Shown here in pieces: positions 4,329 to 54,611 of a stretch of 64,000 nt of DNA. The stretch lies in assembly GCA_002269645.1 (NCBI GenBank), contig NIVC01000114.1, positions 806,001-870,000 of the forward strand. Direction: 5' to 3'. Source of the DNA: Macrostomum lignano. Taxonomy: Eukaryota. The notes beneath the pieces are model-generated. The model searched no databases. It was not told the DNA's origin and saw only the letters and a list, made by a program, of their open reading frames with translations. A program made the translations under genes and the position numbers. Each line of letters opens with the position of its first letter. Positions within the stretch are counted from its first letter, which is position 1.

Positions 4329-4590
4329 GTGAGATGGTGGATGGGATCTGTGAGATGATGGATGGGATCTGTGAGATGATGAATGGGATCTGTGAGATAA
4401 TGGATGGGATCTGTGAGATGATGGATGGTATCTGTGAGATGGTGGATGGAATCTGTGAGATGATGGATGGGATCTGTGAGATGATGGCTGGGATCTGTAA
4501 GATAATGGATGGGATCTGTGAGGTAATGGATGGGATCTTTGAAATGAAATGATGGATTGGATCTGTGAGATTAAAGATGGGATTTTGGAG
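4329..4590 (+). repeat. 21-bp minisatellite type A (GATGGGATCTGTGAGATGATG), intron 2 of gene A
   Basis: About 12 direct copies, interrupted by a 1-kb insert; the last unit resumes near 5594. Confidence 0.95.
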
Positions 4591-4592
4591 AT

Positions 4593-5593
4593 TGTAACAG
4601 TCACTATTTTTGCCTATCATTTTACGTATACCGCCTTAGTAAATACGACTATTTTTCAAAATCGCTAAAAACATCTCTGTGCCTGCATAAATAAATCTTT
4701 TATGCCGTTAATATTAAATCTTAGTATCGATTAGTAGCCTACAGTATAATCTAGTGTTTTTATTAGTTTAAACGCGTACGCCATATTGATTATGTTTTAT
4801 ATATAAGCAAGAGAATAAATCGAGAAGGAGAATAACTTTTTCCTCCGCCAGCCTGGCTATAATTAAGGCCTGCTTTGCGGTTGTCACCGAACATTGTTCT
4901 AAAAATAGACTAGTCTTAGTCATTTAAAGCGCTCCGCCTTCCCTCTCCTGCGAAGCTTGTACAGTTAGAAGTGTTCAACACTTCCCTTCCCCCTATTACC
5001 CGCTCCCCGGGACGTTCAGTCCTACCCCGAGTAATTGCCCTCCAATCGCCCGCCTCTTCTGCCCTCCCCCCCTTTTAGTGGATAGTCTGTCTGCTCAGGT
5101 GTACAGCCTTATTCCCTCAGACGTACAGTCTGCCCCAGCATCCCCGCTCCCAACCCTTCTTTGTAGAAATCTCCCATATTCATTAGGCGGATTGCCTTCT
5201 TACAATGCTATATTAGACGGACAATTTACTTATGCCAGCATTCCCTATTAGTGTTTAGAAATCCCCCATTAGTGCGCTTTTCCAGGCAACTCCGATCCAT
5301 CGCGAAGCCCTTAATTCCCCTCTCCCATCTATATTCCCCGGACTGAGAAGAAAATTGTGTCTTGCCACTCGGACACACCCACGCTCCAGGAATACTCCTT
5401 TCAGTAGGCTATTCCAAACATTTCCTCCCGAATCCCCGAGTCCCAACTTAATTTCCCAACCCATAGCACAGTTTTGGTGATTCCCAGTGAACAGTGAAAG
5501 ACCCCTGTAACACTTTTGGTTGCAGCGAATACCTCCAACAGTTTCTGTAGCTAAACGGTGGGATAAAGCTATAAATAAACACCCCCTACAACA
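4593..5593. mobile_element. Probable solo LTR (~1 kb) inserted in minisatellite A
   Basis: TGTAACAG...CTACAACA termini; flanks AGAT/AGGT (4-bp TSD with one mismatch); absent from the paralogous array at 51805-52447. Confidence 0.55.
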
Positions 5594-6806
5594 AGGTGAT
5601 GGACGGGATCTCTGAGAGGCTGTACGAGTTTTGTTAGGTGTCTTATTGTATGGAATGATAGTATTCGTTTGTTAGACAGACATCAAGATAAGATTTCGGG
5701 ATTTTTACGAGCTAAGTCAATTGTTAGCATTAATATTATTCTTTATAAATTTTCAGAAAACAAACTTTCTGTAAAAAAATCCCACATAAAAGCAGCCAAT
5801 ATACTTTTCAATTGAGTTGATCTGGTTCAGCCTAACTCAACAATTTAAAAAAATTATTCGGATAATAGTAGTTCTAAAACATTTTTTAGAGTTTCAAATT
5901 TTGATTTGCAGCAGGTCACCCACCTGTGTAGCCGGGAACGCAGCTGCAGTGATACCAGGGGCTCGCGTCTGTGTTGCTGCAGGTGCCTCCGTTTTGGCAG
6001 CGACTGCCTGAGTATGTAGCACAGAAGTCTATTCTATTGGTGCAATATGTACCAGTGTACGCGTCAGGGCACAGACACGGAGGAGTGCTTGACGTCACAC
6101 CACCCGGCCAGCAAATGCCGCCATTCTTGCAGTCGCCCTCGCTGCAGGCGGCTCGCCTCGTCCGCGCCAATTCGTTGGCGTCCTCGTCAAAACCTTCATA
6201 TTGAAAATCAGAGGAAAACTTATTAACTGTCATTTAAGCTACCTTAAAACCCCAACTCACCAGCGGATAAGTCTTCTGAAACCGAAGCACACGAAGCTCG
6301 ATGCCAAGCCAGCGTCAGAACTAGAATTAGTGTCGGCAGTCGAATTTCGGACGACATTCCGGACGAGCTCAGAGCCGAGGCTTATCTAGTTTGAAACTCG
6401 CACAAGTTTGAGCAGCTGAAAATCAAATTGAATCAAATTTGAATCAATTGAAATAGAAGGAATTAGTATAGCTGTGCTGAATATGCTACTTATGAGATAA
6501 TTAATATTGAAATAAGAATCAGATTTGCCATACTGGTTAATAAAAAATAAAGTAATTAAAATCAGTCGCAGGTATATTTTCATTTCAAGCAGCTGGCTGA
6601 GGCTCAGGCAAAACAACTTTTTCGACTCTAAAAAGCACTGAATTATTTTGTGACTGCTGAAAAATGCACATTGAAAATGCATTGAATTTCGCTATTTAAA
6701 ACCGGCTCGGCGGTTTTAAACTGAAAATTTTCAATTTTAAGGTCGATCATATTTTTAGACAATTTTGAACTTAGGCTACTACTTATAAAGATTTTCAGTA
6801 GTCAAG

Positions 6807-7633
6807 TGTGACGTTGCTAGTTTAAGTGGTCCCGCAAAAGGGCCGTTGGACTATAGTTTCCCTTGTAATTTCTCATATTAATTTTTCCAATAGTTTATTC
6901 TAACGTTTACTTATAGTAGCGTGCAAATAATTTGTATCAATTGCTAATTCACTGTGTATTTGCTATCCTCTCTCGCGACCGTATAATTTTGGCACGATCG
7001 ATAATTTCAAGTTCTCTCGCCAGCCAATGAGAGCTCTCCGTGTTTGCGCTACCCCCTTTTGCGCTCTTTATTAAACCCCCCGCCTGGCGGCGGGCACTCC
7101 TCACTTGCTCTTGGCCTCCCTCTTGTTAGTCCTTGTGTTCTGTGTTCTCTAGGCTTGTCCTTCGTCCCGTCTGGCTTGCCTAGCCTTGCCTAGCCTTGTC
7201 TAGCCTTGTTTTCCTTCTCTCTGTTTGGCTGCCTCGAGCCTCCTTACTTCACGCCACGGCTGACGCCAACCTCGCCACTGCTCATCTACCTGCCTACTGC
7301 GTCTCACTGCCTTCACTGTGCTCACTGCCATTGCTCATCACGTCGCATCGCCATTGCACCGTTTGTCTGTCACTTGACTATCCAATTTATCTTCAAAGAA
7401 ACCATTGTTGCAGCCGCCAGTGCCCAGAAAGCTATAGTTTGTTTATTGACATAAATTTTAACCAAGCCTAGTATTGATACTACCAATAAAACCAACTACG
7501 GCAGTTCCTGCCTCTATCGCCAAGTGCTCCGCTACAAAATCCGCTTATGAGAATTGTCTTCGACTTATTTTGGGACTAAAACGGCCCTTTTAAGGCTCTT
7601 CGCATAACTGGCCGCTACGCCAATAACGTGACA
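6807..7633. mobile_element. Solo LTR (827 bp) upstream of gene A
   Basis: TGTGACGTT...AACGTGACA inverted termini; exact 5-bp TSD TCAAG (6802-6806, 7634-7638); empty site with a single TCAAG at ~53655 in the duplicate. Confidence 0.9.
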
Positions 7634-8099
7634 TCAAGTAAGACCTTTACAAGTATAAAGAGTTTTAGTAAAGAAAAATCCAGAAAAAAGCTGGATTTTA
7701 TTTTTAGAAACTAAACTAGAATTTTTGTAAACTAAAAATATTCCACTTGGGAACTCGGTCGCCTGGAATTGCAGCAGCACGGCAGTTGACCATGAAAATT
7801 TAAAAAATCGAAAACGGTAATTAGCAAAAACTAATGCATTATGATACAATGAGCAGTTTGTTTCTGGTTTTACATTGCCTAACAATTTCAAGTATTCACT
7901 TTTATTATGCCCAAACTTCATAAGCTCCAAACTTCCTAACACAAATTTCACAACGCTCACAATTCACCTGTCAGTGTTGGGCATTGTTAAAGAAAATTTT
8001 AACTTCCGTTAACGACGAAAGGATTTGCCGTTAAATTGAAAAAAAATATTTTTCAAAAAAAACGCTAAAAAGGTGGGCCTCTACGGGCTTCTGTCTCAC

Positions 8100-8246
8100 A
8101 GTTCGATAAACTGAAGACGGCAGGCGCAACAACCGACAGCACCACGATGCCCAGTGCTCCGAGGGCGACTCTTAGCACAATGGTGACAGTGCTAGAGATG
8201 CCCGTGTCAGAGTCTGTCGGCTTGATCTCGGGGTAACGGCGAATGT
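8100..8246 (-). other. Orphan transmembrane-coding exon (147 nt, phase 1-1)
   Basis: cag|AC acceptor and T|gtgaga donor; encodes DIRRYPEIKPTDSDTGISSTVTIVLRVALGALGIVVLSVVAPAVFSLSN; open copy at 54113-54259. Confidence 0.55.
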
Positions 8247-8941
8247 CTGACAAGTGCAGTGGATTTGTGAAATTGAGAACTCCTTGTAGTTGTATGTTTT
8301 AATATTGTGAAAGTGTGAATAACATGTCCAATCACTGCCTTACGCGGTGATTAACTGATAAATTACTTTGAATTCTTTTGAAAACCTGACATCACAATAT
8401 GATACCTTGACACTCAGAGGGCGCCCAATGTAACACCCTGACATCATGTTCAACACTGTTAAACATTTCAACATTCTAACATGGCTCTGTTAGACACTCT
8501 AAAACCTAATTAGACACCCTGATTCCCATTTAGACAACTCGCTACCAAATTAGAGGCGCCCCTGGTAGAATAAAGAAAAGACTGAGTGAGCCAAGGACAT
8601 TCCACTGTAACAGGAAAGCAAAACAAAATTTTCTAACCAGCGGAGCAAGCCTTGGCACCAACCAGACACCAGCAGACAAACCTCGGAGCCAAGGAATAAC
8701 TGAAAGTGTAGATTGGCTGGCCAATCGCTGTTAGCGGGGCCGGGGGGCTTGTCGTCGCCCGTGTTTGGGGGTGCTTGGTCCGGGGGTGGGTGCGCCGCCC
8801 CCGGGGCGGGGGTGGGTGTCTGTGGGGCCTTTTTAGCCCCGTGCGTTGTGCCCGCCTCAGCCTAACTCTCCTCGCCAGCTTGCATGCGTTTTTGCGATTT
8901 TTGGCTAGCCCAACTTAATTACTCAACTTACTCTGGGTACT

Positions 8942-9631
8942 ATGAGTTTGCGTAGGATGACTGTAAATCAGCTACGTGAAGAATTGAGTGATAGGGGCCT
9001 GAGCACGCACGGCTACAAGAAAGACCTGGTCAGCAGACTCTCCACTGCGATGAACCAGAGCGAAGCAGCTAGTCGGCGGGAACAAGCGGCGTCAAAGTCC
9101 GCGGAGACCGACAACGAAGGTCGGCGGCAGCAGCAGCAACAACGGCTGGAGGCAGGGGAGGCGCTGGACCTAGCAGAGCTCCGGCGGAAGATAGCTAGCC
9201 TGGAATCGGAGACGGCAGCAATGCGCCAGCAGCTGGAAGGCCGATTTAGACCAGGTGAGGTGGACCAACAGCTTCTTAATGAGCCCTCTGATTGTAGTAG
9301 CGACATGAATATCCCGAGTATGCTCAGAGGTCCCGGGTTCGAGACCAGGCTCGAGCCCTCAGTAGCTCAACTAGGGTTACGGGCGGCACCACTCGTCGTT
9401 GCGGATTTCTGCGGTTGCGACCCTCGGACGGCGCCGGCGAGTCGTAGGGAAAAGGTGCTGCATCCAACCGCCAATCAGCCTAAACCCGAATCGCTGGGAA
9501 TTTTGCTTCGGCCCACATCAACGTTAAGGAGACCATCACACCTGTCCTCAGCATCCTCGCGGCCCCGGGCCGCTTCGCCGGTGCGGACATCGTCGTGTAC
9601 AGCGACAGCTCGGCGGCTGTCGGTGCGCTGA
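8942..9631 (+). CDS. ORF1/gag-like protein with N-terminal SAP domain and coiled coil; 3' part runs out of frame across a deletion
   Basis: LRRMTVNQLREELSDRGLSTHGYKKDLVSRL matches the SAP consensus; followed by a helical Q/E/L-rich segment. Confidence 0.7.
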   Translation: MSLRRMTVNQLREELSDRGLSTHGYKKDLVSRLSTAMNQSEAASRREQAASKSAETDNEGRRQQQQQRLEAGEALDLAELRRKIASLESETAAMRQQLEGRFRPGEVDQQLLNEPSDCSSDMNIPSMLRGPGFETRLEPSVAQLGLRAAPLVVADFCGCDPRTAPASRREKVLHPTANQPKPESLGILLRPTSTLRRPSHLSSASSRPRAASPVRTSSCTATARRLSVR

Positions 9632-9780
9632 ACAAGCTCAGCTCGCCATGTAACGACGTCAACCGGCTCCTGCACACGCTGTCGCTTGCCTGCGACGCGT
9701 GGGGTCTGCGGCTGCGGGCCTTTCACGTTCCGGGCGCCTTCCAGGTCCTGGCGGACCCGGCCTCTCGCCTTGCTTCTAGA
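9484..9780 (+). pseudogene. DIRS-type RNase H fragment (C-terminal half)
   Basis: HINVKE...DIVVYSDSSAAVGALNKLSS...LRAFHVPGAFQVLADPASR fits the DIRS RNase H pattern (HINxLE...VxxDN...HIPGxxNxxADxLSR). The N-terminal DAS motif and the whole RT are missing. Confidence 0.75.
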
Positions 9781-9839
9781 AGCGGGGCGCAGAATTTCTT
9801 TCTCCGCTTCTACCGTAGCCTGCATGATTTAGCTGCTGA

Positions 9840-10913
9840 ATCCTGCTGCATCTCGCGCCACGCGCTCTGCCCTGCCTCCGCCTCGCTTTTGCTTTTGCAG
9901 GTCCGGCGCCTCCTGCCTCCCGCCTACCCGGGCCGCTCCTTCGCTTTCTCGCCGACGCCTGGGCTCCTAGTACGAGGGCATCGTACGCTTCAAACCTCAA
10001 ACAGTGGCAGCGCTTCTGCAACCTCGAAGGTGTTCAGCCACTAGCGGCGTCCCCGGTGCACTTGGTCGAGTATGTGCGACGCCTGGCTAAGCGCGGCGTG
10101 GAACCCGGTAGCCTCGGTGGAGACCTGGCGGTTATCAGCTGGAGCTTCAAGCTGGCGCAACTCCCCGACATCACCAAGTCCGGCCTGATCGATCTGGCAG
10201 TTAAGAGCGCCAAACGGACAAGCGGCCATTCAGTCAAGCAGAAAGACCCCATCACCCCGGCTGTTCTGCTTTCACTGGCAAACCAGGTGAACCCAAGAGA
10301 CCCTGCAGACGCCGCCTTTTGGGCCGCCGTGCTCTGCTGCTTCTGGGCGCTTCTCAGGAAAGCAAATGTCTGCGGGCGCCACTCCATTCTCGTCAGCGAC
10401 ACTCAGGCCGATAGTCAGTGCTGGAGACTCCGAGTTCGACAGTCGAAGACCAACCAATGCGGACAAGACTACCAGGAGGCGGTGCTGCCAGTACTCGGAA
10501 ACCACCCACTTTGTCCTGTCCAAGCCCTGCGGCGGCATTTTCAGGCTAACAAGCTGCGGTCTGCGACGGCGCTCACTCGGCTGTTTTGCGTCCACATCGC
10601 CGGAAGCTGGTGCCCGATGTCATCGCGTCAATTCGACCGCCGCCTCGCTCGGGCTCTGACAGATGCGGGTTGGGCGGCGACAGCTTTCTCGGGCCACTCT
10701 CTACGACGGGGTGGCGCCTGTCTGGCGTTCGACAGCGGCCTCGACGTGGAGCAGATCAAGCGGCTGGGCGGCTGGCGCAGCGGCGCCGTTTCACGCTACC
10801 TGCCGCAGTCGGGAGGTTGCCTCCGTCTCCTGCGCCCAATCGTCAACCGTGTGCTGTCGGCACCTCCTAGCGCTCGCCTGACTCGCCCCGTCGCCGTGTA
10901 CCCTACTCTTTGA
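9840..10913 (+). CDS. Tyrosine recombinase/integrase (DIRS/Ngaro type), intact reading frame
   Basis: Stop-free frame from 9840 (no ATG; the ORF track starts at GTG 10056). N-terminal APSTRASYASNLKQWQRFC; catalytic set LLRKAN (R), SKTNQ (K), GHSLRRGGA (HxxR), GGWRS (W), SRYL (Y). Confidence 0.9.
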   Translation: MLLHLAPRALPCLRLAFAFAGPAPPASRLPGPLLRFLADAWAPSTRASYASNLKQWQRFCNLEGVQPLAASPVHLVEYVRRLAKRGVEPGSLGGDLAVISWSFKLAQLPDITKSGLIDLAVKSAKRTSGHSVKQKDPITPAVLLSLANQVNPRDPADAAFWAAVLCCFWALLRKANVCGRHSILVSDTQADSQCWRLRVRQSKTNQCGQDYQEAVLPVLGNHPLCPVQALRRHFQANKLRSATALTRLFCVHIAGSWCPMSSRQFDRRLARALTDAGWAATAFSGHSLRRGGACLAFDSGLDVEQIKRLGGWRSGAVSRYLPQSGGCLRLLRPIVNRVLSAPPSARLTRPVAVYPTL

Positions 10914-11444
10914 TCCCTTTGTTCGGGTTTTTTGGGATGTTTTGCGCGTGCTATCCAATTGTTGCCTTTGTTCTCTCCCTCCGGCCGTTCCGCTATGTCT
11001 CGTTGAAAGGCCATGGCAGATCGGACCTTCCGTACAGAGTCCGGTTGCTGCGCTCCAGACAGACAGTTTTTGTCTTTCCTTGGTGCAAGGATTTGGTGAG
11101 GAGTCGACAACGTTCGATTCGCAGTGTTTGCCTAAAAATTGTTGGTTGGCGAATTAGCGGATTCTGATGGATTGAAATTGCATTATTTGAAGCAGAAACA
11201 ATCACATGTTACCATAGAAACCAGCCTGGCAGTTGCATTGGTTGCGGCAGAGGTGGGACACTGGCCACCGTTTTCACACTTGCAACCTGTGAAAAGTTTA
11301 CAATTGAGTTATGTGAATAAAAGCTTAGCTCCTTATTCAAGGTTCTAACTGTGTACCACTTAGATAAAAGGAGATAAATAAAAATTTTGTTATGCATCTT
11401 TATATAACAAAATAGATTTATATAACAAACATCTTTATTTAACC

Positions 11445-11700
11445 TAATAAACAGCTCAGCCGCAGCTATTGTGCGGCGCATCATGAAGGCGGCGTGCGGC
11501 TGCTCAGTCCAAGGACTGGGGTGTCGTCACACACACTCAATTAAACCCCAGCTAATGCTGGCACCCATTTTACAGCTGAGCGAACTGAAGCAATGCAGAG
11601 TCAATTCGCTTGCTCGAGGACACAAGATGTTCCTAGTAGATCTAGAGTCGAACCCCAGACCTCGCAGTCGTGAGTCCGACTCTCTAACTACTCGTCTAAA
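11445..11700 (-). mobile_element. tRNA-derived SINE
   Basis: Minus-strand tRNA-like head with B box GGGTTCGACTC and central CAGCTGTAAAATGGGT; same family as 16352-16660; duplicate at 54612-54900. Confidence 0.8.
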
Positions 11701-13544
11701 AGCCTTTTTTACCACCAAAAAATATCTCCTGAAAATGCTACAAACCATAAAAAAATACCAAAACTTTCTTATTTAATGCGCTCACATTACTCTGCCAAAA
11801 TAGCTACTAATCATTTCCTAAGCGGACTCGGAGGCAGAATAGATTACTGCGACAAATGTACTCCGTAATAAATGTCCATTACAAGTCTAAAGCATATACA
11901 TGTACAATAACAAAAAATACCAAAAAAATCTGAATAAAGTAAAATAGTTTTCTTTTGAATGCTTTAAAACAAAGCTAATGAAGCTTACTGCCAGTCGTCT
12001 TTGCATACGGATGAACCCAACGCAAGCAACACAGTTGATAAAACCAGCAGGTGCCACATGCTGTTTAAATACAAAACGATCTCTTTAATATTACCAGTAT
12101 ATGACCTTTTTCATTGGCTTGACGGCTTGCGGTCTGATGGTTGCTAAATGGAGTCTCTGCTCACATTGCAGCTGGAAGAATTAAAGAAACATTGAATAAA
12201 ATATACATATATCAATTTCGCTCAATAAAAATAAATTTCTGATAAATTTTCTCACAATAAAATTGATGGGGCTAATCTGATAAGGAGTATTAGAAGTACA
12301 ACACTATTAATTCTGCCCTAAAAAATTAAGGTCGCATTACGCGTACTACGCTAGTATAAGTAACTTTTTAACAACAATTGACTCAAGAACACAAAATAAC
12401 AAAGCTTACAATAAGATGTGTTCAAGTATTCTATCAAAAATGAAAAAATCCGTTTAAAATATGCAATATACAATTAGTGTTTGTTATCTGTTGTTAAACG
12501 AGGAGGGTAGCCAAGAGGCTCCCGCGGATCAGCCCAGCGAAGGACTCTGCCGCTGAGGGGGCACATCTTACCAGGGGCATATAGCCCGAGCAGCCCAGAT
12601 TGGGACCTGACTTCTTGGCCAGGAAGATTGGATGCTACTAACCCAAGCCTATTGACCAAGACACCGCCAACCCAACTTGTGGAATCAGGGACGGTGCAAG
12701 GACCGAATCCACCCAGGCCACCCCCCAGCAGACAAATCCCGGGAGTGCGCGAATAAAGACTGGAAAAACTTCGAAATACTAAATTTGTGAACATTTGTGA
12801 ATTTGTTATCATCCTTGAACTAAATTTTCTATCACCAAACGAGTGGCAAAGCACAGGTTTCATCATCGCAAGAAACCCGTCGAAAAGACCCTCTGTTGCC
12901 TTCTTTTGGCTCTCCAAACAGGTTTGACGATGCTAAGCGAAATTGGAAATATGAAAAAGGATACCTCCAGGTTGAGAGTCTGTTTGAGGATTTTTGAAAT
13001 TACAGACAGTGAACTCTAGTATCTGGCTAGGAATTGCATTTAGCTTCTTTGTACCTGTAAATCAATTAGAAGTTCAATATTGGACGGACCTACAGGTACG
13101 GTGTCATTTTGAATAGAAAATTTGAGCTGTCTGCCACATGAAAGCAAATTAAACTATTGCTTGAGCATTCCTTGAAGGCATGAAAATGGACTACTTAAAG
13201 TATAGACATCAAAGGCGATTACTATTATATCATGTAAGCTAATGTGGTCAATTGTGAAATCCTAAACTAGTTCTCAATATCCATAGACTCAATCAATCAG
13301 AGGGAACAAAGGAGCTGGCAAAACAAAAAAATTGTGATATGGAGGTTTGGCTATACTTTTTAAATTTACAAGATATCGGCCTGGAGTTTACTACATCGCC
13401 TAAAATAAATTTGCATGTATAGCATAAAATCAACGCCAAAACTTTCACAAGCTCAAAATTTTACCAAAACAAAAATGTATGCATTAACTTTTATCAGAAC
13501 GTTTATATTCGCCTCCCAATAGTTATTTCTTATGCAAGTAACAC

Positions 13545-13705
13545 CTAGCGCGGGGAAGCGCGCTGCAGACACCGGCACCACCGGATCTCCCTACTCGACA
13601 CCGCAGCCCCAGCTGCCCATGGTCGCCAGGGGTTAGCGAAATGCGCCGCAACGCCTCCTCGCTGCCTCCGGATGCACGGAGTCCCTGTAGCCAAGTCAAG
13701 TAAAT
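13545..13705 (+). mobile_element. Short 3' UTR/tail copy of the same LINE family
   Basis: Matches 3770-3885 and ends in CAAGTCAAG; absent from the duplicate at ~56470. Confidence 0.6.
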
Positions 13706-13754
13706 CAGCACCTTTGAGGAGTGCTATAGCCCGTAATGTATCAATGAGCCTTTT

Positions 13755-13975
13755 TCATATCCCATGTACTCTCCCCATACCCTATGTATCCTTCCTATAC
13801 TTCATGTGCCTTCTGCATACCCCATGTGCCCTCCCTGTACCCCATGTGCCCTCCCTGTACCCCATGTGCCCTCCCCATACTCCATGTGCCCTCCCCATAC
13901 TCTATGTTCCCTACCCGTACGTCTGCGCCTCCCCCATATCCCATGCGCCCTCCCCATTCCTCTGTGCCTTTCCCA
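13755..13975 (+). repeat. Degenerate 21-bp minisatellite type D (CCATGTGCCCTCCCTGTACCC)
   Basis: About 10 degenerate copies; shorter copy at ~56475-56610. Confidence 0.85.
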
Positions 13976-38894: not shown

Positions 38895-41800
38895 TCACAT
38901 TCCACAGCTGTCAAAATATTGAATTAAATTTTTCATTTGGCAAGTCGAAAGAAAGTACGAGATTAATACGAGACTACGAAGAGCCGGAGCCTTGCAGACG
39001 GCTCCGTTCTGACACGGCTGTCCGAACCGCTCGCACTCGTTGATGTCGACTGAGCAGGTCAGGCCCTCGTAGCCGGGCAGGCAGTCGCAGGAAAAGCTCC
39101 TGACACCGTCGGTGCACCTGCCGCCGTGCTGGCACGGGCTCGATGCGCAGTCATCGATCTTGGAGCTGCAGGTGACGCCTTGGAAGTCGACACGGAAGCA
39201 GTCGCAGGTGAACCTGATTTAGAGTTGAAAAAGGCAGTTTGACACCGTAAATGTGTGTGATGATGAAGTAAGAATCATAAAGAATTGACTGTTCGTTTCA
39301 TTGCTTGATAAACACCTGTTTCAGCTTTGCGTAGCTGGCAAAGGAAGATATTTGGTCTTCAATGTCTCTTTAGTAGGATTTTCCTAAAAACTGCTTACGG
39401 AATTCTACAATTATTTATGTTACACGCACCACTGCGCAGGCATCTCTGAGGTTCAATATGAACCGAAACTTTTTTTCTAGAATAAAATATTACGAGGCAC
39501 CGAAACTTCACAGCTTTACAATCAAAGCTGTCTTTGTGAACCAAGATGGGAGAAAAGGACTAAGTCTAGAGAATTATCAAATCTCAAAATTTTGTTTGGG
39601 ATAAATGTCTGCTAAAACGTCATTTTCGGAAGTGTTCTCAACCGCAACGTTGAGAACGTTGTTAAGCATGTTAGGCAACGTTTCAAAAGTTTCCATTTTT
39701 AGAGTCGAATTCAATCTCAAAAAATTAGCAAACAAGTCTCGAAGTTACTTGAGCCGTTTCTGTTCCTGCCACTGTTTTATCTTGTAGTGTCGGACCAAAA
39801 CTTTAAACTGGCTTTGAACAGGGGCTTGGGGCATCCAGATAGGCTCGTAAGTTGGGAAGAAATCAAACTCGTGACGTTAACTATTTCTAAAAACTTAAGT
39901 TACATGTACTAGATGACAAGAAAGCTGTTAGGGCATGTGAGAAAAGTCTAAACTAAATTCATTCTATCGTTAATATTGTCTAAATCAAAGACTTCTGAAT
40001 CAGATGCAATTCAATTAAAAAAATGGCAGAAAATTCCAATCTGAGGCTTTGCGCATGCAAAAACACATCTGCAGCTACCTAATAGCTCAGAGCAACTCAC
40101 GTGGAGTTTCCGTCGCTGCAGACACCGCTGTTCTGACAGGGCCCTGACAGGCAGTAGTCAGTGTCCACTGAGCAGTTCCTGCCCTCCCAGCCTGTGAAGC
40201 AGCTGCAGCTGTAGTCATTCACCAAGTCTGAGCACACGGCGTTGGCGCAGGGCTTGCTGGCGCAGTCATCAATGTTGATCTCGCAGTCAGTGCCTGTGAA
40301 GTTAACAGAGAATTTCAAAAGTTTCAAGAAATCATCTTCTGCTTGCGCTCCGCTATTTAGCACAAATTTTGCAAAAAGGATCGAATTTCAAGCCGAGAAT
40401 TATAAAAATACACAAAATTTTGAAGATTTCTTATCGTCTTCCAGACAGTGCAGAACAGAAAACGGAAACCTGAACAATGCCATTAAAAGCAGCCTTTGAA
40501 TTGAATGCTTCTGGCAACCAGAGCACTGTGCACTAAAAGCATGTCTATCATACATGCATAGGCGTGCTAAAGATGAATAGCATTGTCTCAAACTGTCAAA
40601 AATTCTGACTGGTGGCAAAGCGATCAGCATCGATTTCTGGCCTGAAACATTTCTTCCAAGGCTTGTGCGATGAACGGAAAGAGCTATCGAAACGTGACGA
40701 TAGCGGAGTGGCGCCTCCGACTCTTAGGTGGGCGATCCTTTATCTGAGGTGGGCGCTCCTGTCTCTGAGATGGGCGCTCCCGTCTCTGAGGTGGGCGTCC
40801 CTGTCTCTGAGGTGGGCGCTCCTGTCTCTGAGGTGGGCGCTCCCGTCTCTGAGGTGGGCGTCCCTGTCACTGAGGTGGGCGTCCCTGTCTCTGAGGTGGG
40901 CGTCCCTGTCTCTGAGTTGGGCCCTCCTGTCGCTGAGGTGGGCGTCCCTGTCTCTGAGGTGGGCGCTCCTGTCTCTGAGGAGGGCGCCCCTGTCTCTGAG
41001 GTGGGCGTCCCTGTCACTGAGGTGGGCGTCCCTGCCTCTGAGGTGGCGCCCCTGCCTCTGAGGTGGGCGCTCCTGTCTCTGAGGTGGGCGTCCCTGTCTC
41101 TGAGGTGAGCGCCCCTGCCTCTGAGGTGAGCGCCCCTGTCTCTGAGGTGGGCGTTCCTGTCTCTGAGGTGAGCGCCCCTGCCTCTGAGGTGGCGCCCTAG
41201 TCCTAGCTACATGAAATTCCACGGTCGGTGGTTGCCATTTCCAAGAGGTAGCAAAAGTTGAGCCCTTGTTATTTCACGAGACTGTTTAAATATTTCATTC
41301 AGTTTTTAAGGAGAAGATTTTTGTTACGGTGCAATTCTTTTCCGTCCCATGCCTACCTCCGCCCTCTCTCTGCAGGTGTCTCTCTCTCTCCATTGAGTAT
41401 TTTTAGCAATTCATTTGTTTGACTTGCATCCTTTCTGGCTGGGCATTTACCCCAAAATTTAAACGAGCAAAACAGAAAATCAATGTTTAATAATCGAAAA
41501 TATTTCTATCATCAACTCAATCTCGCAAGCAGTTACGCGTAGTTATACGGCGCTTCATTTTCAACTGGTTTTGCCCCACCTGGTCACCCACCTGTGTAGC
41601 CGGGAACGCAGCTGCAGTGATACCAGGGGCTTGTGTCTGTGTTGCTGCAGGTGCCTCCGTTTTGGCAGGGATTGCCTGATGTTGTAGTACAGTAGTTTAT
41701 TCTATCAGTGCAATAAAAACCAGTGTACGCCTCAGTGCACAGACACGGAGGAGTGCTTGACGTCACAGCGCCCGGCCAGCAAACCCCGCCATTCTTGCAG

Positions 41801-44744: not shown

Positions 44745-47700
44745 CTAAAAACCTTGATTAGCGTAAATGGCAGGTGCGAAATCCGAGTTCTCGTTTGCGT
44801 ATTCGCAACCTGCGGCTTCAGCAATGGAATCCATCTGGACTGGTGGAAGTGGCTGGTTCTGCCGATTCTTCTGAGAGGGGGGGGGGCAATTGGAAAAGAA
44901 AATAGTGGAATATACTAGATATATGATATTGATATTCAATCATCATACTTATCAACACTAAACATGGAAGGTGTCGATTAATTTCTCTTCAAAGTTAGAA
45001 TATTGAAGGTCTAGTTTGCTCTTTAGCAATCTAAATATTATACTCTTTTTGCTTTCGAAAGTTATAACAAATGTCAAGGGACGCGAATTGATATCTCACC
45101 ACTGAAGCTTTGCAGAGCTCTTCAGTAGCTGAGGCATACTGATGCGCTGAGTCAACATCCTGCACCTTGGCATTCTGTGTGGGCACACAATATTTTATAT
45201 ATTAGTGAGAATTAAAAGCCACATCTCAAAATGTATTTAAAAATTCCACCGCAAAGCTTACACGTAAAACTTCACCAGTTGCTGAAACTGTTGGTTCCAC
45301 ATACTTGGCTGGCTTGGTTCGCGATAAATAGCCCTAAACAATGGCAAAACAATTATTTCAGTTACGGTTAATGCGTCATTGTCGAATATAGCACAAAAAT
45401 ATAACAATCTCTGCACTTACAAAACGGATTAAAAGACCCACCACGGCGACCGCGAGCGTAGCTGTGAAGACGCCAGTAAGTGCGCCGACAAGTGCGCCTA
45501 CAACTACTGAAGAGCTTCGGGATTCCTCAGGATTGGATGCATGCCTTGATTCTAAAAATATAGAATTCATATTCAGTAAAACAACGCACTCAATAATATA
45601 AAATCAACATACACAAACCGTATATTGAGACGACACTGCAATACATCTCACCATAAGAATCAATACAGACGAATCCGGGAGCCAGATCATAGCTAAATGA
45701 CCCATTGAAAGGCCAAGGCAAAAATCTCAACTTGTAGTTCGCTTGGTCGCTTCTCTCCAAACAGACTTCACCGTTCTTGCACGGATTCGGGCTGCAGTCG
45801 GGGTGATCAACCGAGCAGTTCACGCCCGAGTAGCCATTGTGGCATTTGCACCTGCGGAGTTGCCATAGACAATATGCACTACGGAACATGGCAGCAATCT
45901 GAATCACAAAAACTGCTCACTCATAGGAATTGTAGAAAACGTCCACGCATGTAGCTCCGTTTCTGCAAGGTGAAAACGTTTCGCACACCTCAGAAACAAC
46001 TCCCAGTCGTACACCGGACGAATCGCTGGCTGCAATGGCCTCAGGAAGGCTAGCCAGCAAGCTGGGAGAGACCGGACACAGCATCAGCGGCTTCTCGCCG
46101 TTCAGTTTGGGGCCAGAAATGATGCCGCGGAAAGCTGTGGTGTTCGCTGGTAGAACTGAGGCCACTGCACTCGATAGGGTCGGCGCTGACCTCTTTGATC
46201 TACGGCTGCCGTGAGCTACAGGCAACAATGAGGAGTCTGGGGCTGCCCGAAGACCGCTGAAGCCGCCGATGATGAGCTGGCCTGACAGCTGCGGCAGCGG
46301 ACTCGCACTGCTCAGCGATGCAGAACTAACTGAAGATGACACTGACAGCGACAGCGAGCGACCCGATATCGACACGAAGATCTTCACGGAGACGAAGCTG
46401 CCGGTGGCCACCGAGTCTGGGGACGTCAGCGCTGCGATGTGGGAGCCGTTGCTGTGCAGTAACTGGGCGGACAGACGGCCAGAGTGATCGATCTGAAAAG
46501 ATTTAAACAAAGCTCAAAAGAAAAACATCTTGAAATCCACCAAGAGTACCATTAAGGACACTGACCGTAGCGAGCAGTCTCGGAGTGGTCGCTGAGTCGC
46601 TCGGGGCGCCCAGCAGCAGCAGAAACGCTCCTCGAGACAAAGTCACCAGCCTCAGCTCAATCGTCCACGAGTCTCCTCCAGACACACTTGACGCATTTGG
46701 CAGAGAAGCGAAACTCGCAGACGATACAAGTCCGCTTATGCCGAATGAGTACTGTGGAAGCAGCACGGAGCAGTTTTTGCCTCCGAAGTCACCGGGGCAG
46801 CCGGTGCAGGCATAATCCGCTACCAGGTCCTTGCAGACGGCTCCGTTCTGACACGGCTGTCCGAACCGCTTGCACTCGTTGATGTCGACTGAACAGGTCG
46901 GGCCCTCGTAGCCGGGCAGGCAGTCGCAGGTGAAGCTCCTGACACCGTCGGTGCACCTGCCGCCGTGCTGGCACGGGCCCGACGCGCAGTCATCGATCCT
47001 GGAGCTGCAGGTGGCGCCTTGAAAGTCGACGCGAGAGCAGTCGCAGGTAAACCTGATTTTGGATTTAAAAAGGCACTTTGAAACCGTAATGCTTGTGACG
47101 ATGAAGTAAGAATCTAAAAAATTGCCTGTTTCATTGTTTGATTAACACCTGTTTTAACTTTGCTTAACTATCAAGGGAATATAGTTGGTTTACAGTGTCT
47201 CTCTTTCCTAGGATTTTCCTAGATATTCCTTACGGAATTTTACAATCGTTTATGTTAAACGCATCAGTAAAAAAACCTCTGAGCTCTTTTTAAAAAAATA
47301 AATTGCAAAAAGACTATAAGGCACTGAGACTTCACAATTTTACAATCAAGACGGGAGAAAAGGATTGAGTCTACAGAATTATCTAATCAGATAATTCTGT
47401 TCAGGATATAATTATGCGTTACAACGCCGCCTTTCGAAACCGTTCTCAAAGGAGCCCTTCAGATGTTTTTTTGAATCGAAATCAGTCACAAAAGAGTTTG
47501 CAAACAAGTTTATACCCTGACCTATCGATGTCACTTTAGTTGCTACCAAAACATTTCTTACAGCGTCAGACCCAAAAAAGTGATTTAGTGGCAGGGGCTC
47601 GGGGCATCCGGAAGCATTGGGAAGACAGAAAACTCGAGATCCTAAATATTTCCAAAAACTGAAGTTGCTAGCTGACAAGAAAGCTGTTTGGGCATGCGAG

Positions 47701-50700
47701 AAAGCTCTAAATAAATTTATTGCATTGCCTACATTATCAAAACAAAGACTGCAGATCCTTACGCAATAAAATGAAATCAACGGCAAAAAGTTTTTAATCT
47801 GAGGCTTTGAGTACACCACATTGCATCTGAAGCTTCTCAAAAGCTTAGGAAACTTACGTAGAAATTTAGAAATTCACGTAGAGAAAAATAAGTAGTTAAA
47901 ACATTCTGATCTGAGGCTTTGCACATGCCGAAACCCATCTGCAGCTTCCCAATGGCTCAAACACTCACGTGGAGTTTCCGTCACCGCAGACGCCGCCGTT
48001 CTGACAGGGCCCTGACAGGCAGTAGTCAGTGTCCACTGAGCAGTTCCTGCCCTCCCAGCCTGTGAAGCAGCTGCAGTTGTAGTCAGTCGCCAAGTCTGAG
48101 CACAGGCCGTTGGCACAGGGCTTGCTGGCGCAGTCATCAATGTTGTTTTGGCACCTGTCACCTGCGAATCCCGTGTCTGTGCAGTCGCAGGTGAATCTGA
48201 AAAGAGGATAAAATTCAGCTCTATTGTAACAAAAATGCTCAAAGTTTTTCTATCGGCGGTTTTGGCGATAAATTTTAATAACTGTTACAAACAAAGATTG
48301 TAAAATTTGGAAAAGGGTTTTATAGTTTTGAAATTATACCCTCACCGCAACCGTATGGTAGTTCAAGTAGCCACTACAGAAAAATAGTTTCAAATAGAAA
48401 CTGGAAAGCGGTGAAAGGAGTACCAGGGGTGACAAGGCTAATAGGGAACCAGCTCGTCACTTTACTAACGAAAACTGAAGGGTTGGCGTGTCAGGCCATG
48501 GCTGTTTTGTCAGAATTTACTACCGTCAGGAACAAATCTCATTCTGCATCTCCGGTGTTGAGAAAGCGGAGCACTTCATCTGTGAAGGCACCGCCTCTAC
48601 TTGGGACAGGCTCACCTGCGTCGACCCCAACCCGATTATTTCCGACGTTTTCAGACCCGAGAATTTCTGCCAACTCGTCTGCTACCTGAGGGCTACCGGG
48701 CCAGCAAATACCCACCTCCGGGACTCTTTGGAGGGAGACCGCCCTGCAGACACTGGCACCACACGCCTCCCCGCTGCGTTTGGGTGCCCGAAGCCCCTGC
48801 AGCTGAGTCAAGTCAACAAGGAGAACTCACGTGCCGTTGCCATCAATGCACCTGCCGCCATTGAGGCAAGCGCCCGTTGGACAGTCGTTGTGGTTGATGT
48901 TGCAGTTCCTGCCCTCCCAGCCTGTGAAGCAGCTGCAGCTGTAGTTTTTCAGCAGGTCCGTGCACAGGCCGTTGATGCAGGGCTTGCTGGCGCAGTCATC
49001 AATGTTGCTTTGGCACCTGTCACCTGTGAATCCTGTGTCTGTGCAGTCGCAGGTGAATCTGAAAAGAGGATAAAATTCAGCTCTATTGTTACAGAATTGT
49101 TTGGAAATCCGAGTTTTTTATTGGTGGTTCCGGTAATAAATTTTAAGAACTTTTACAAACGAAAATTGTAAAACTCGGAGTAAGGTTTTATAGTTTCGAA
49201 ATCCTACTTACACCGCAACCGTATATTAGCTGCAGTAGCCACTACAGAAACAAACTTATCATTTGAAACTGGAAAGCAACCAGCCCGTAACTTTAGTAAA
49301 AAATTGGAGGATGTGCGCGTCAAGTCATGGCTGTCTTGTCAGACATCGCTGCCTCCAGGAAAACCCATTTTGTCTATACGGTGTTGAGAATGCGGAGCAC
49401 TTCATCTGTGAATGCCCCGCCTTTACTCAGGACAGGCTCTTCTACCTTGGCACAAACCCGGGCCTTTCCGACGGTTTCAGGGCCGAGAATTTTTTGCAAG
49501 CTCGTCCGCTACTTAAAGGCTACCGGGCTAGACTCGATCCACCCCTTGGACTCTTCAGAGGGGGACCACGGTGCGGTCACCGGCACCACCGGATCTCCAT
49601 GTGTTAAACCGCAGTACCAGCTGCCCGCAGTGGCCAGGGTTAACAAAAGGGACTTCAACGCCTCCCCGCTGCATCCAGACTCCCAGAGCCCCTGCAGCTG
49701 AGTCAAGTCAACAAAAAGAACTCACGTTCCGTTGCCATCAATGCACCTGCCGCCATTAAGGCAGGCGCCGGTTGGACAGTCGTTGTGGTTGATGTTGCAG
49801 TTCCTGCCCTCCCAGCCTGTGAAGCAGCTGCAGCTGTAGTTTTTCACCAAGTCTGAGCACAGGCCGTTAGCGCAGGGCTTGCTGGCGCAGTCATCAATGT
49901 TGATCTCGCAGTTGGTGCCTGTGAAGTTAACAGGAAATTTCAAAAATAGCAAAGAAAATCATCTTGCTTGTTCGCTTTCCTGATTCAGCACATTTTTTAG
50001 CGAAAAGTCAAATTTAAAGCGGAGAAGTCAAAGCATCAAATGCACAAAACCTCGAATGTTTCTTATCGCCTTCCAGACAGTGCAGAACAGAAACGAAAGC
50101 GGAAAGCTGAGCAATGTCACTCAAAGCAGCCTGAATATTCATGGCAACCAGAGCACCATGCGCTAAAAGCATGTCTATCATGCATGTATTATTTTACGCG
50201 TACTAAAGATGAATAGCATTGTCTCAAACTGCAGACAAATTAAGATAATATCGGCACTACAGGGGCGTAGGGGGCGCCTAAGAGGCACCAATCTTCGATT
50301 AGATCTGAGTACAATCTGAGAAGGTACGGGCTACAATAGAAAACTCGTACACATAGCCATCATAACCATAAAGTGAAAAGTCAAAATTTCTGAATGGTGG
50401 CAGGGCGAGCAGCTTCTATTTCTGGCCAGAAACTGATTTCTTCCAAGGCTTGTGCGATGAACGGAAAGAGCAATCAAAACGTGACGACAGATGGGCGCCC
50501 CTTCTCTGGGGTGGGCGCCCCTTTCTCTGAGGTGGGTGCCCCTCTCTGTGAGGTGGGCGCCCCTGTCTCTGAGGTTGTCGCTCCTGTCTCTTAGATGGGC
50601 GAACCTGTCTCTGAGGTGGGCGCCCCTGTCTCTGAGGTGGGCGCCCCTGTCTCTGAGATGGGCGAACCTGTCTCTAAGGTGGGCGCCCCTGTCTCTGAGG

Positions 50701-53208
50701 TGGATGCCCCTGTATCTGAGGTGGGCGCCCCTGTCTTTGAGGTAGGCGCTTTCGTCTCTGAGGTTGTCGCTCCTGTCTCTGAGGTTGTCGCTCCTGTCTC
50801 TGAGGTTGTCGCTCCTGTCTCTTAGATGGGCGAACCTGTCTCTGAGGTGAGCGCCCCTGTCTCTGAGGTGAGCGCCCCTGTCTCTGAGGTGAGCGCCCCT
50901 GTCTCTGGGGTGGGCGCCCATGTCTCTGAGGTGAGCGCCCCTGTCTCTGAGGTGGGCGCCCCTGTCTCTGAGATGGGCACCCCTGTCTCTGAGGTTGGCG
51001 CTCATGTCTGTGAGGTTGGCGCTCCTGTCTTTGAGGTTGGCGCCCCTCTTTTTGAGGTGAGCGCCCCTGTCTCTGAGGTGGGCGCCCCTGTCTCTTAGAT
51101 AGGCGAACCTGTCTCTGAGGTGGGCGCCCCTGTCTCTGAGGTGGGCGCCCCTGTCTCTGAGGTGGGCGCTTCTGTCTCTGGGTGGACGCCTCTGTCTCTG
51201 AGGTGAGCGCCCCTGTCTCTCGGGTGGGCGACCCTGTCTCTGGGGTGGGCGCCCTTGTCTCTGAGGTGGGCGCCCCTGTCTCTGAGGTTGGCGCTCCTGT
51301 CTTTGAGGTTGGCGCTCCTGTCTCTGAGGTGGGCGCCCCTGTCTCTCGGGTGGGCGCCCCTGTCTCTGAGGTGAGCGCCCCTCTTTTTGTGGTGGGCGAC
51401 CCTGTCTGAAGAAAGCGCCCCTGTTGTCGTGTCTTAGCAATAAGAAAGACTCTTTTCTATTTGAGAGAGCTCTTAGCTGAGCGTAGAATACGAGACTTCA
51501 ACTGGTAGCCAAACCGGCCTTTATATTATATTGAATATGACCGACGGCAACATGCCGCCTACATTAGGAGTACAGCGTGATCAAACTTCAAGCTTTAGCA
51601 TATAGAATAGAAAGATGCAACGTGCCGCGCGTGCACACTAAGTACATTGGGAATGAGTACACTAGATATTAAGTACGCAGATACGCAACGCGAGTCAGAG
51701 ATAGTTGATGAGCCCCGCCAAGCGGCGCCACACCTGTCTGTGAGGTTGGCGCCCCTGTCTCTGAGGTGGGCGCCCCTGTCTCTGAGGTGGGCGCCCCTGT
51801 CTTTGAGATCTGTGAGATGATGGATGGGTTCTGTGAGATGATGGATGGGTTCTGTGAGATGATGGATGGGATCTGTGAGATTGAGGATGGGATCTGTGAG
51901 ATGATGGATGGGATCTGTGAGACGATGGATAGGATTTGTGAGATGATAGATGGGTTCTGTGAGATGATGGATGGATTCTGTGAGATGGTGGATGGGATCT
52001 GCGAGATGATGGATGGGATCTGTGAGTTGCTGGATGGATTCTGTGAGATGATGGATGGGATTTGTGAGATGATGGATGGGTTCTGTGAGATGGTGGATGG
52101 GATCTGTGAGTTGCTGGATGGGATCTGTGAGTTGCTGGATGGGATCTGTGAGTTGCTGGATGGATTCTGTGAGATGATGGATGAATTCTGTAAGATGCTG
52201 GATGGGTTCTGTGAGATGCTGGATGGGATCTGTGAGATGATGGATGGGATCTGTGAGATGATGGATGGGATCTGTGAGATGGTGGATGGGTTCTGTGAGA
52301 TAATGGATGGGATCTGTGAGATGATGGATGGGATCTGTGAGATGAAGGATGGGATCTGTGAGATGAGGGATGGGTTCTGTGAGATGATGGATGGGATCTG
52401 TGAGATAATGGATGGGTTCTGTGAGATGATGGATGGGATCTGTGAAAGGCTGTACGAGTTTTGTTGGGTTTCTGATTGTATGGAATGATGGTATTCGTTT
52501 GTTAGATAGACATCGGGATAAGATTTCGGGGTTTTGAAGTCAATTGTTAGCTCTCCTACAGTCTTGATGTGATGTTGTTATATTATTCTTTATAAATTTC
52601 AGAAAACAAACTTTCTGCTAAAGAAACTTCCACATTAAAAACAGCCGATACACTGTCCAATTAAGTTGATCTGGTTTAGCCTAACTCAACAATTTTACAA
52701 ATTTATTTCGGATAATAGTAGTTCTAAAACATTTTTGAAGTTTCAACTTATGATTTGCAGCAAGGGTCACCCACCTGTGTAGCCGGGAACGCAGCTGCAG
52801 TGATACCAGGGGCTCGCGTCTGTGCTGCTGCAGGTGCCTCCGTTTTGGCAGGGACTGCCTGAGTATGTAGTACAGAAGTTTATTCTATTGGTGCAATAAG
52901 TACCAGTGTACGCACCAGTACACAGACACGGAGGAGTGCTTGACGTCACAGCACCCGGCCAGCAAATGCCGCCATTCTTGCAGTCGCCCTCGCTGCAGGC
53001 GGCTCGCCTCGTCCGCGCCAATTCGTTGGCGTCCTCGTCAGAACCTTCATATTGAAAAGCAGTGGAAAACTTATTAACAGTCATTTAAGCTACCTTAAAA
53101 CCCCAACTCACCTGCGGATAAGTGTTCTGAAACCGAAGCACACGAAGCTCGATGCCAAGCCAGCGTCAGAACTAGAATTAATGTCTGCAGTCGAATTTCG
53201 GACGACAT
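44745..53208 (-). CDS. Gene E: short Crumbs-like receptor with A-type head, ~892 aa
   Basis: Exons 53208-53112, 53044-52775, 49918-49726, 49058-48831, 48196-47969, 47052-46566, 46492-45921, 45851-45652, 45551-45421 (TM), 45333-45262, 45174-45100, 44870-44745; total 2679 nt. Confidence 0.88.
48480..48815 (+). mobile_element. LINE 3' fragment (intron, gene E)
   Basis: Duplicate of 31970-32310. Confidence 0.65.
49310..49712 (+). mobile_element. LINE 3' fragment (intron, gene E)
   Basis: SHGCLVRHRCLQENPFCLYGVENAEHFICECPAF; duplicate of 32810-33205. Confidence 0.65.
50485..51805 (+). repeat. 21-bp minisatellite type B, intron 2 of gene E (interrupted by a 308-bp insert)
   Basis: About 45 copies in two blocks; runs directly into type A repeats. 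Confidence 0.95.
51425..51732. mobile_element. Small solo-LTR-like insert (308 bp)
   Basis: TGTCG...GCCACA (TG..CA) termini; exact 5-bp TSD CCTGT (51420-51424, 51733-51737). Confidence 0.75.
51805..52447 (+). repeat. 21-bp minisatellite type A, intron 2 of gene E
   Basis: About 30 copies of GATGGGATCTGTGAGATGATG and variants. Confidence 0.95.
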
Positions 53209-54533: not shown

Positions 54534-54611
54534 TAGCTTTGCTCCTTATTCAAGGTTCTAACTGTGTACCACTTAGATAAAAGGAGATAATAAAAAAATT
54601 TTTTATACATC

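Follow-up and report, generated by a model that had tools for sequence, protein, structure and literature searches.

Introduction

Hybrid genes formed by unequal crossing-over between tandem paralogues are well described, including haemoglobin Lepore, the CYP11B1/CYP11B2 chimera, red/green opsin and GYPA/GYPB, and the shuffling of exons encoding epidermal growth factor (EGF) modules proceeds through phase-compatible introns, with the 1-1 module as the classic case. The 70-bp repeats of the variant surface glycoprotein (VSG) genes of Trypanosoma brucei lie between genes and serve repeatedly in programmed gene conversion. Here, we describe a stretch of 64,000 nucleotides from the flatworm Macrostomum lignano (contig NIVC01000114.1, positions 806,001 to 870,000, assembly GCA_002269645.1, Mlig_3_7; hereafter the window), which holds part of a cluster of tandemly duplicated Crumbs-like genes with 21-bp minisatellite arrays in intron 2. 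One of these genes, gene E, is a true hybrid between the head (promoter, exon 1 and the EGF1-2 exon) of one paralogue and the body (exon 3 onward) of another, and its composite array probably represents the joint of a single large tandem duplication.

The window corresponds to positions 1–63226 of locus L003 in reverse complement (100% identity). For the wider analysis of duplications, 54 kb of extra flank were added, and the loci L005, L004 and L003 were joined into a super-locus of 117.6 kb in gene sense (S; window coordinate = 105916 – S), while L001 (gene 1 and gene 2) and L002 served as comparison loci outside the contig cluster. Tandem arrays were called by Tandem Repeats Finder (TRF), exons 1–3 were located for the five window genes with a visible 5' end (A, B, C, D and E), and block-wise identities were compared among these five genes first and then among eight genes. 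The coordinates of the exons and intron-2 arrays located in the window are collected in Table 1.

Results

Gene E joins an A-type head to a short-type body

In gene E, the homology partner changes from gene A to the short-body group exactly across a composite intron-2 array. Upstream of the arrays (promoter/intron 1, exon 1, exon 2 and 5' flank), the blocks of E are 91.6–97.5% identical to those of A, and the genes fall into three groups, namely A with E (92–97%), B with D (93–97.5%) and C with F and H; compared with the other genes, the A/E flanks reach about 65% and do not align. Downstream (3' intron flank and intron 3), E is found together with C, H and I (93–99% within the group, 93–98% for the blocks of E), and B groups with D for the flank only. 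Over the body, E is most similar to I (96.1%), followed by H (94.3%) and C (93.3%). A first-pass annotation of this DNA had predicted incongruent groupings of exons 1–2 and exon 3 onward, and this is what we observed for E, with the head going with A and the body with C/H/I. The five head/body combinations it had listed for A, B, C, D and E were likewise all recovered, the body of A being of the long type as seen on the flanking contig.

At the joint itself (...ggcgcccctgtctttgagat/ctgtgagatgatgg..., the slash marking the transition), the array changes from GC-type to AT-type units. The joint unit CTGTCTTTGAGAT agrees with a GC unit at 11/13 positions and also resembles the end of the 3' flank of A (CTGTTTTGAAGGGG). 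Extended homology at the parental breakpoints, as in classical non-allelic homologous recombination, was not found; only about 4–10 nt of imperfect microhomology are present at the joint, which points to microhomology-type joining. The 3' flank of A (4095–4326) is unique on the contig, recurs in L001 gene 2 (94.9%), L001 gene 1 (77%) and L002 (71%), and the L001 and L002 paralogues sharing it all carry AT-type units. Since the A-type 3' flank is therefore an established lineage, and since I, H and C are colinear throughout the C-type head, array and body, gene E is a derived recombinant and not an ancestral composite. Moreover, both breaks lie in the same phase-1 intron and gene E is consequently in frame, exons 1–6 splicing into an open reading frame (ORF) of 501 aa in which the hybrid frame is preserved. 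Ordinary unequal crossing-over, as proposed previously, is sufficient to account for the hybrid. The 325-bp insert that splits the GC-type array of E has no second copy in the window, the 117.6-kb super-locus, L001 or L002.

A single tandem duplication accounts for the large repeats

Self-BLAST of the window yields two large duplications, 5594–21285 with 52424–64000 (92–94%) and 23776–34684 with 40172–51190 (92–95%). The in-window ends of both had been placed at or near the arrays. Of these four ends, three coincide with array edges, including those on the upper side of the second duplication, and the fourth (23776/40172) falls 121 nt inside exon 3, some 540 bp from the arrays, and is "near" only in a loose sense. 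The first duplication really runs down to the array edge (4327 in A, about 51807 in E), because a 1-kb insert splits the A array and leaves a remnant unit behind it. Instead of three or four array-ended limits, the two duplications supply the two flanks of a single joint (n = 1).

In the super-locus, S 12819–53470 (I body, H, F, E head) is colinear with S 55425–100298 (E body, D, C, B, A head), and the colinear chain comprises 27,077 bp at 92.8% from end to end. The two copies are adjacent, have the same orientation and share one joint, whose sides match the two outer parental sites, i.e., the edge of the AT array of A and a position within the GC array of gene I (S 12128–12818, outside the window). 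We therefore consider it probable, with a probability of roughly 0.78, that one tandem duplication of 42–47.5 kb took place and that the GC/AT junction of E is its novel joint.

Upstream of the joint, this duplication corresponds to the first self-BLAST pair. In the second pair, the body half represents general short-body paralogy (E–C 93%), and the head half a separate resemblance of the B and D heads (95–97%). A reading of the second as an independent, recent tandem duplication of 16.4 kb was rejected, as only 11 kb of each 16.4-kb period are homologous and the E body is closer to I than to C, which indicates older paralogy plus the B/D head resemblance. The previously suggested duplication unit of body(n), spacer and head(n+1) is an arbitrary phase of the tandem repeat, since C, H and I are colinear from head through array to body.

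We propose the following course of events. The family ancestor would already have carried a 21-bp minisatellite in its phase-1 intron 2, which all paralogues inherited and which would later have diverged into AT-rich and GC-rich types. One unequal exchange between non-allelic intron-2 arrays about 47 kb apart, with break 1 where the AT array of A ends on its 3' side and break 2 inside the GC array of gene I, a short-body gene, would then have duplicated in tandem everything in between (I body, [D], C, B and A head). The joint would have created gene E, in which an A-type promoter, exons 1–2 and AT array are fused to a GC array and an I-type body from exon 3 onward. After the duplication, copy 1 would have lost D and exon 1 of H, and F would have fused its exons 3 and 4, while the other exchanges in the cluster (gene conversion of exon 2, EGF-exon fusion, deletions) would not have used the arrays. 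The colinear duplication, the place of its joint and the open frame of E are seen directly in the sequence, whereas we infer that the arrays caused the break, as fragile, slippage-prone or mispairing DNA that was joined via the imperfect microhomology CTGTyTyTGAG; the joint is compatible with unequal sister-chromatid or homologue exchange plus microhomology-mediated joining, or with template switching.

Several observations weigh against the single duplication. Copy 1 contains no equivalent of D, and H lacks exon 1; the head of F is C-like, not B-like; and the B and D heads are more alike (95–97%) than the duplication average. The one-event model consequently needs later deletions or conversions, and other event orders are possible. 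The AT and GC units are weakly homologous overall (10/21 positions, shuffle p 0.34), the joint rests on one haplotype of one assembly, and gene E has no clean transcript model, the annotated model starting at its exon 1 (P0070) being chimeric.

The intron-2 arrays are an inherited feature of the family

The claim that every gene with a visible 5' end carries a 21-bp array in intron 2 held for all five window genes by TRF and exon mapping, and could be extended to 8/8 family genes of the contig and 3/3 genes elsewhere (L001, L002). The array persists in every paralogue, even where the intron flanks no longer align. As the arrays were inherited with the paralogues, the five out of five represent one ancestral feature and not five independent coincidences. 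AT-type units are found in A and the 5' part of the E intron, GC-type units in B, C, D and the 3' part of the E intron. Among the contig genes, L001 and L002, all A-type introns are free of GC-type units and all B/C-type introns free of AT-type units. Written in common phase, the units are TGAGATGATGGATGGGATCTG (AT-type) and TGAGGTGGGCGCCCCTGTCTC (GC-type), with the same period and orientation and a core shared at 9/11 positions (shuffle p about 0.02).

Array lengths range from 0.26 to 1.9 kb and copy numbers from 12 to 45 in the contig genes, with remnants of 2–4 units in L002 and 12 copies in A as compared to 39 in its L001 counterpart. Between C and E and between B and D, small indels break the unit phase, as seen in an ungapped register-shift comparison. 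The transcript strand is C-rich, as previously stated: plus-strand G/C counts are 267/37 in the AT array and 315/274 in the GC array of E, so C on the sense strand is far above G in AT arrays and slightly above it in GC arrays.

Some further properties of these repeats were recorded. On the plus strand, the GC-type unit (e.g., 34000–34685, 50492–51407) holds GAGGTGGGC, an exact 9-nt match to the core of human hypervariable minisatellites, given as GGAGGTGGGCAGGARG / AGAGGTGGGCAGGTGG (PMC9069542 Table 2); the match was noticed post hoc, and 33 of 20,000 shuffles of the GC unit equal it. On the sense strand, the AT-type unit reads ATCCCATCCATCATCTCACAG, a pyrimidine-rich run ending in CAG (e.g., 51807–52445, minus strand), and GC-type units contain CCTCAG and ACAG; judged by sequence, the intron-2 arrays are strings of 3'-splice-site-like motifs. 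Trans-splicing is widespread in M. lignano. The stretch between genes J and I likewise holds AT-like 21-mers (at S 3313, 6554 and 7765–9115), the last being an intergenic array of 64 copies outside the window whose unit, AACCCAGCCACCATCTCACAA, matches the AT-type unit at 17/21 positions, which means that the repeat family is not strictly confined to intron 2. Together with the 15% of the M. lignano genome made up of tandem and simple repeats (PMC5730564), this indicates that such arrays are common as such.

The arrays do not appear to be general breakpoints

Apart from gene E, the limits of exchange in the cluster tend to lie elsewhere. The B–D block homology stops in exon 3 (40172/23776), exon 2 of D carries an A/E-like central tract including the state of an 18-nt indel, exon 2 of I is A/E-like (95%) between C-like flanks, and the deletion edge of H lies in intron 1, away from the intron-2 array. 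In F, a mosaic limit coincides with the fusion of exons 3 and 4. Genes C, H and I are colinear through their arrays, e.g., S 11484–14906 with S 70589–74033 at 92% straight through. In total, one clear (E) and one possible (F) of about five exchange limits lie across arrays; in F, the 5' intron flank is C/H-like (92%) and the 3' flank belongs to the B/D length class, with 86–89% identity to all. Arrays make up 14–57% of intron 2 and about 27% of the span from head to intron 3, which gives a binomial P of about 0.4, as estimated from the identity blocks. The chance that both parental breaks of E hit arrays is about 0.13 if breaks are uniform in intron 2 and about 0.004 if they are uniform locus-wide, by arithmetic from array and exon coordinates, the true value depending on selection for an in-frame joint. 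The arrays hence appear to be an inherited intron feature that was used once, with no evident enrichment as breakpoint markers among these few limits. From the earlier idea that crossover in intron 2 reassorts heads and bodies, the one hybrid with its joint exactly at the arrays remains, but a general rule is not supported, since the other limits are found elsewhere. A specific F-like origin of D exon 3 was also considered and rejected, the whole exon being 89–91% identical to every EGF-pair exon of the SVDTDY type.

Alternative explanations

A far-reaching alternative to the single duplication holds that the intron-2 arrays are recurrent germline hotspots, at which heads are systematically reassorted onto bodies family-wide. 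The E joint and the partner change of F across intron 2 would fit, as would the existence of all four pairings (A-type or B/C-type head with long or short body) and the retention of an array in every paralogue, with a GC unit matching the human minisatellite core (PMC9069542); but the low share of limits at arrays, the colinearity of C, H and I, the limits in exon 3, exon 2 and intron 1, and the tendency of alignments to stop at arrays regardless, which biases the impression, make such a role unlikely. That the array was kept throughout this fast-expanding family because it is a break- or mispairing-prone site in a phase-1 intron, a germline hotspot repeatedly yielding in-frame hybrids and large tandem duplications and, at the extreme, used somatically, appears more doubtful still. 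At this extreme, the arrays would act like immunoglobulin switch regions or VSG 70-bp repeats, and programmed or somatic switch-like recombination would join a chosen head to a chosen body in single cells, for which only the architecture speaks, i.e., a repeat array before each body in a tandem surface-protein family. The resemblance to switch regions suggested in the first-pass annotation does not extend to a G-rich non-template strand: the sense strand is C-rich, so that R-loop or G-quadruplex logic is inapplicable, and the arrays are short. A promoter, a signal peptide and intact splice sites of its own are already present in every gene, and the hybrid is fixed in the germline assembly and about 7% diverged from its parents, which leaves this explanation with hardly any credibility.

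Two further explanations concern the composite array itself. It could be an assembly artefact, in which a chimeric read join within repeats connects two paralogues, given the high repetitiveness and redundancy of the genome (tandem and simple repeats, 15%; PMC5730564), the position of the joint in repeats and the confused annotation at the locus (P0070). We regard this as very improbable: an overlap assembler has no reason to join arrays of about 50% identity, the flanks differ by about 7% from each candidate source copy, so that head and body of E represent distinct loci and not re-used reads, and colinearity extends over more than 40 kb on both sides. It is scarcely conceivable, too, that the ancestor had an AT followed by a GC array, which E retained and of which all other genes lost one each. 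Although the two array types agree in period, orientation and an 11-nt core, neither type is found in introns of the other, and the A-type and C-type flanks (5', 3') are mutually unalignable, yet E holds one of each at 92–95% to the donor; whole-flank replacements would be required in every other gene. On balance, one tandem duplication with its joint in gene E remains our preferred reading.

Structure of the cluster and its genes

The cluster of tandemly duplicated genes in M. lignano spans at least 118 kb. Along S, the gene order is I, H, F, E, D, C, B, A, i.e., eight family genes, plus the divergent gene J; those in the window are all on the minus strand, and the best protein matches of the window ORFs are M. 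lignano proteins. The encoded layout consists of a signal peptide, two N-terminal EGF domains, variable EGF-pair exons, LamG domains, a transmembrane (TM) helix and a short tail; P0185 has Pfam matches to EGF, hEGF and Laminin_G_2. Among full-length matches beyond Macrostomum, CRB2 and CRB1 rank best (27–31% identity, 96–100% of the long form covered), and the long form has a Crumbs-like ectodomain, with EGF repeats interspersed with LamG and one TM helix. The Crumbs family has a short, conserved cytoplasmic tail that combines a FERM-binding GTY motif with the PDZ ligand ERLI at the C-terminus. Neither motif is present in the tails of P0185, P0193, P0069 and P0186 (ends ...QAVYATADRI in P0185 and ...CPQEVFF in P0069), and we therefore name the genes Crumbs-like and not Crumbs.

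Table 1. Exons, intron-2 arrays and related features of the Crumbs-like genes, in window coordinates.
Feature	Position	Strand	Description	Basis
Gene A exon 1	6357-6261	-		GT-AG, open frame
Gene A exon 2	6193-5924	-		GT-AG, open frame
Gene A exon 3	3899..4091	-	starts at 4091; long-type body runs on past window start	flanking contig
Gene A array, AT-type CTGTGAGATGATGGATGGGAT	4327-4583		12 copies; lower edge is parental breakpoint	TRF
Gene A array-splitting insert	4590..5595		1 kb; first 425 bp common to L001 gene 2	98.6% identity
Gene A remnant AT unit	5596-5617		adjoins 5' intron flank	
Gene B exons 1, 2, 3	25747-25657, 25274-24987, 23897-23705	-		GT-AG, open frame
Gene B array, GC-type CTCTGAGGTGGGCGCCCCTGT	24326-24588		12.5 copies	TRF
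Gene C exons 1, 2, 3	37465-37372, 35332-35048, 33410-33218	-		GT-AG, open frame
Gene C array, GC-type CTCTGAGGTGGGCGCCCCTGT	34000-34685		32.8 copies	TRF
Gene D exons 1, 2	42333-42243, 41861-41592	-		GT-AG, open frame
Gene D exon 3	40101..40293	-	single EGF-pair exon	
Gene D truncated exon-6 remnant	38990..39215	-	without following LamG or TM exons	
Gene D array, GC-type CTCTGAGGTGGGCGCCCCTGT	40710-41197		23.3 copies	TRF
Gene E exon 1	53112..53208	-	signal peptide, A-type head; ATG at 53208	GT donor; 96% to A exon 1
Gene E exon 2	52775..53044	-	EGF1-2	AG acceptor, GT donor; 95.9% to A exon 2
Gene E array, AT-type	51807-52445		30.4 copies; came with A-type head	TRF; flank 52446-52769 91.6% to A
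Novel joint, GC-type meets AT-type array (cctgtctttgagat/ctgtgag)	51797..51810		homology partner switches from A to I/C/H group	
Gene E short GC-type stretch adjoining joint	51733-51807		3.6 copies	TRF, sequence reading
Gene E unique insert splitting GC-type array	51408..51732		325 bp	
Gene E main array, GC-type	50492-51407		43.7 copies; came with short body	TRF; 3' flank 49926-50491 93-95% to C, H, I
Gene E exon 3	49726..49918	-	opens short body	exons 1-6 spliced ORF open
Gene E exons 4, 5, 6	49058-48831, 48196-47969, 47052-46566	-		exons 1-6 spliced ORF open
Gene F 3' two-thirds (BOX15_Mlig015644g1)	54080..64000	-	long body; in duplication copy 1	100% match to P0185

Introns 1 and 2 have GT-AG ends and exons 1–3 are open in 5/5 window genes. 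Intron 2 is of phase 1 in all genes and introns 3–5 are of phase 2, and the junction of exons 2 and 3 (..GYTG/T[ND]CEINIDDC..) is the one used by the annotated proteins P0185, P0193 and P0069. In D, exons 1–3 are intact and the body ends inside exon 6 at 38990, followed by spacer-like sequence and the C promoter (37300–40293); gene D is thus probably a pseudogene or encodes a truncated, secreted product. Gene H (S 25036–26400, outside the window) lacks exon 1 and the intron-1 array, unlike its closest relatives C and F, the deletion edge lying in intron 1 about 100 bp downstream of the position at which the intron-1 array of F ends, and its product may have no signal peptide. The number of EGF-pair exons is one in F and D, two in A and B, three in C, E, H and I, and higher in the L002 gene (examples of the region in the window are 47969–49918, 22875–23897 and 40101–40293). 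The single EGF-pair exon of F is a fusion of exons 3 and 4 (S 40449–40658 resembles B exon 4 at 96%). This fusion and the variation in exon number between paralogues show unequal exchange among the repeated exons themselves.

The public model P0070 (BOX15_Mlig028025g1) spans 55 kb (L003 10001–64902, i.e., from window position 53226 to beyond the window start) and is a chimera of exon 1 and the 5' half of exon 2 of E, the 3' half of exon 2 of B, B-like exons 3–4 and a long-body exon near A. Most likely, this reflects a mapping artefact among paralogues; a transcript of an unassembled recombinant copy is less likely.

Other repeats and elements

Intron 1 of gene C contains a further array (35903–37195; 1.3 kb, 61 copies, 95% pure, TRF) with the 21-bp unit CACTCATTTTAGCAACAAGGG, and an array of the same type is present in intron 1 of F (7.6 copies, S 37992–38151, beyond the window end). 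Homology of the intron-1 array to the intron-2 arrays was considered and rejected, as there is no shared core. An additional, unrelated 21-bp array lies in L002 (27574–29377, 86 copies), and the period of 21 thus recurs in at least three unrelated repeat families.

The B–A spacer carries a 2.9-kb insertion (8432–11322) that is absent from the F–E copy. Its plus-strand ORFs (8942–9631 and 10056–10913) include one with a SAP domain and one for a tyrosine recombinase (Phage_integrase), and the insertion is probably a Crypton- or DIRS-like transposable element. A segment of 181 bp near D (38008–38188) recurs in inverted orientation at 43094–43274 and 26489–26670 with 99% identity; it is far more similar than the surrounding paralogous sequence and may be a small mobile element or the trace of a recent conversion. 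Furthermore, a conserved 62-aa ORF with a hydrophobic helix (..AVTIVLRVALGALGIVVLSVVAPAVF..) is found on the minus strand at 8065–8253 and 54076–54264, about 0.9–1.7 kb upstream of the start codons of A and E. The annotated F protein (P0185) does not include this ORF and has a different TM segment.

Discussion

In the locus described here, the growth of a tandem family of modular surface proteins can be followed in a clean and fully resolved case, in which the parents, the joint and the resulting hybrid can all be seen. One illegitimate exchange between intronic minisatellites would have duplicated four genes and, at the same time, set one promoter and N-terminal EGF pair on the body of another gene. 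For users of the M. lignano annotation, the locus also serves as a warning, since the public gene model is a chimera of paralogues. Moreover, it could prompt the question of whether minisatellites, which abound in this genome, drive its structural turnover. In the library searched, no relevant paper on these genes or on Macrostomum minisatellites was found.

The flatworm proteins resemble Crumbs (CRB1/CRB2) in the interleaving of EGF and LamG domains and the single TM helix, but differ in tails devoid of GTY and ERLI and in the expansion of the family into a tandem cluster. With regard to the arrays, human hypervariable minisatellites share tandem units of 10–60 bp and variable copy number (PMC9069542), and the GC unit contains a piece of their core; copy number was compared here between paralogues of one assembly, and the core match is a post hoc observation. 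Immunoglobulin class-switch regions similarly have a repeat array in front of every exchangeable 3' module of a tandem series. They are, however, G-rich on the non-template strand, several kb long, equipped with dedicated promoters and recombined somatically by AID, whereas the flatworm sense strand is C-rich and the event is old and germline.

The VSG 70-bp repeats are comparable in that arrays delimit the upstream edge of a surface-protein family cassette, yet the flatworm arrays are intronic and have one documented use. Parallels to the shuffling of EGF exons lie in the modular EGF exons, the changing copy number of EGF pairs and the kept intron phase, which allows exchanges in frame, although the EGF-pair exons are of phase 2-2 and intron 2 is of phase 1, in contrast to the classic 1-1 module. 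Counterparts of the event itself are hybrids such as haemoglobin Lepore, with which gene E has in common the misaligned exchange between neighbours, the tandem duplication, the in-frame 5'/3' fusion and breaks in phase-matched introns. Here, short imperfect microhomology within diverged minisatellites takes the place of hundreds of base pairs of near-identity, and the duplicated interval carries four genes (about 45 kb). The locus is new, but the type of event is a textbook one, a hybrid gene by unequal crossing-over combined with minisatellite instability, and involves no new mechanism.

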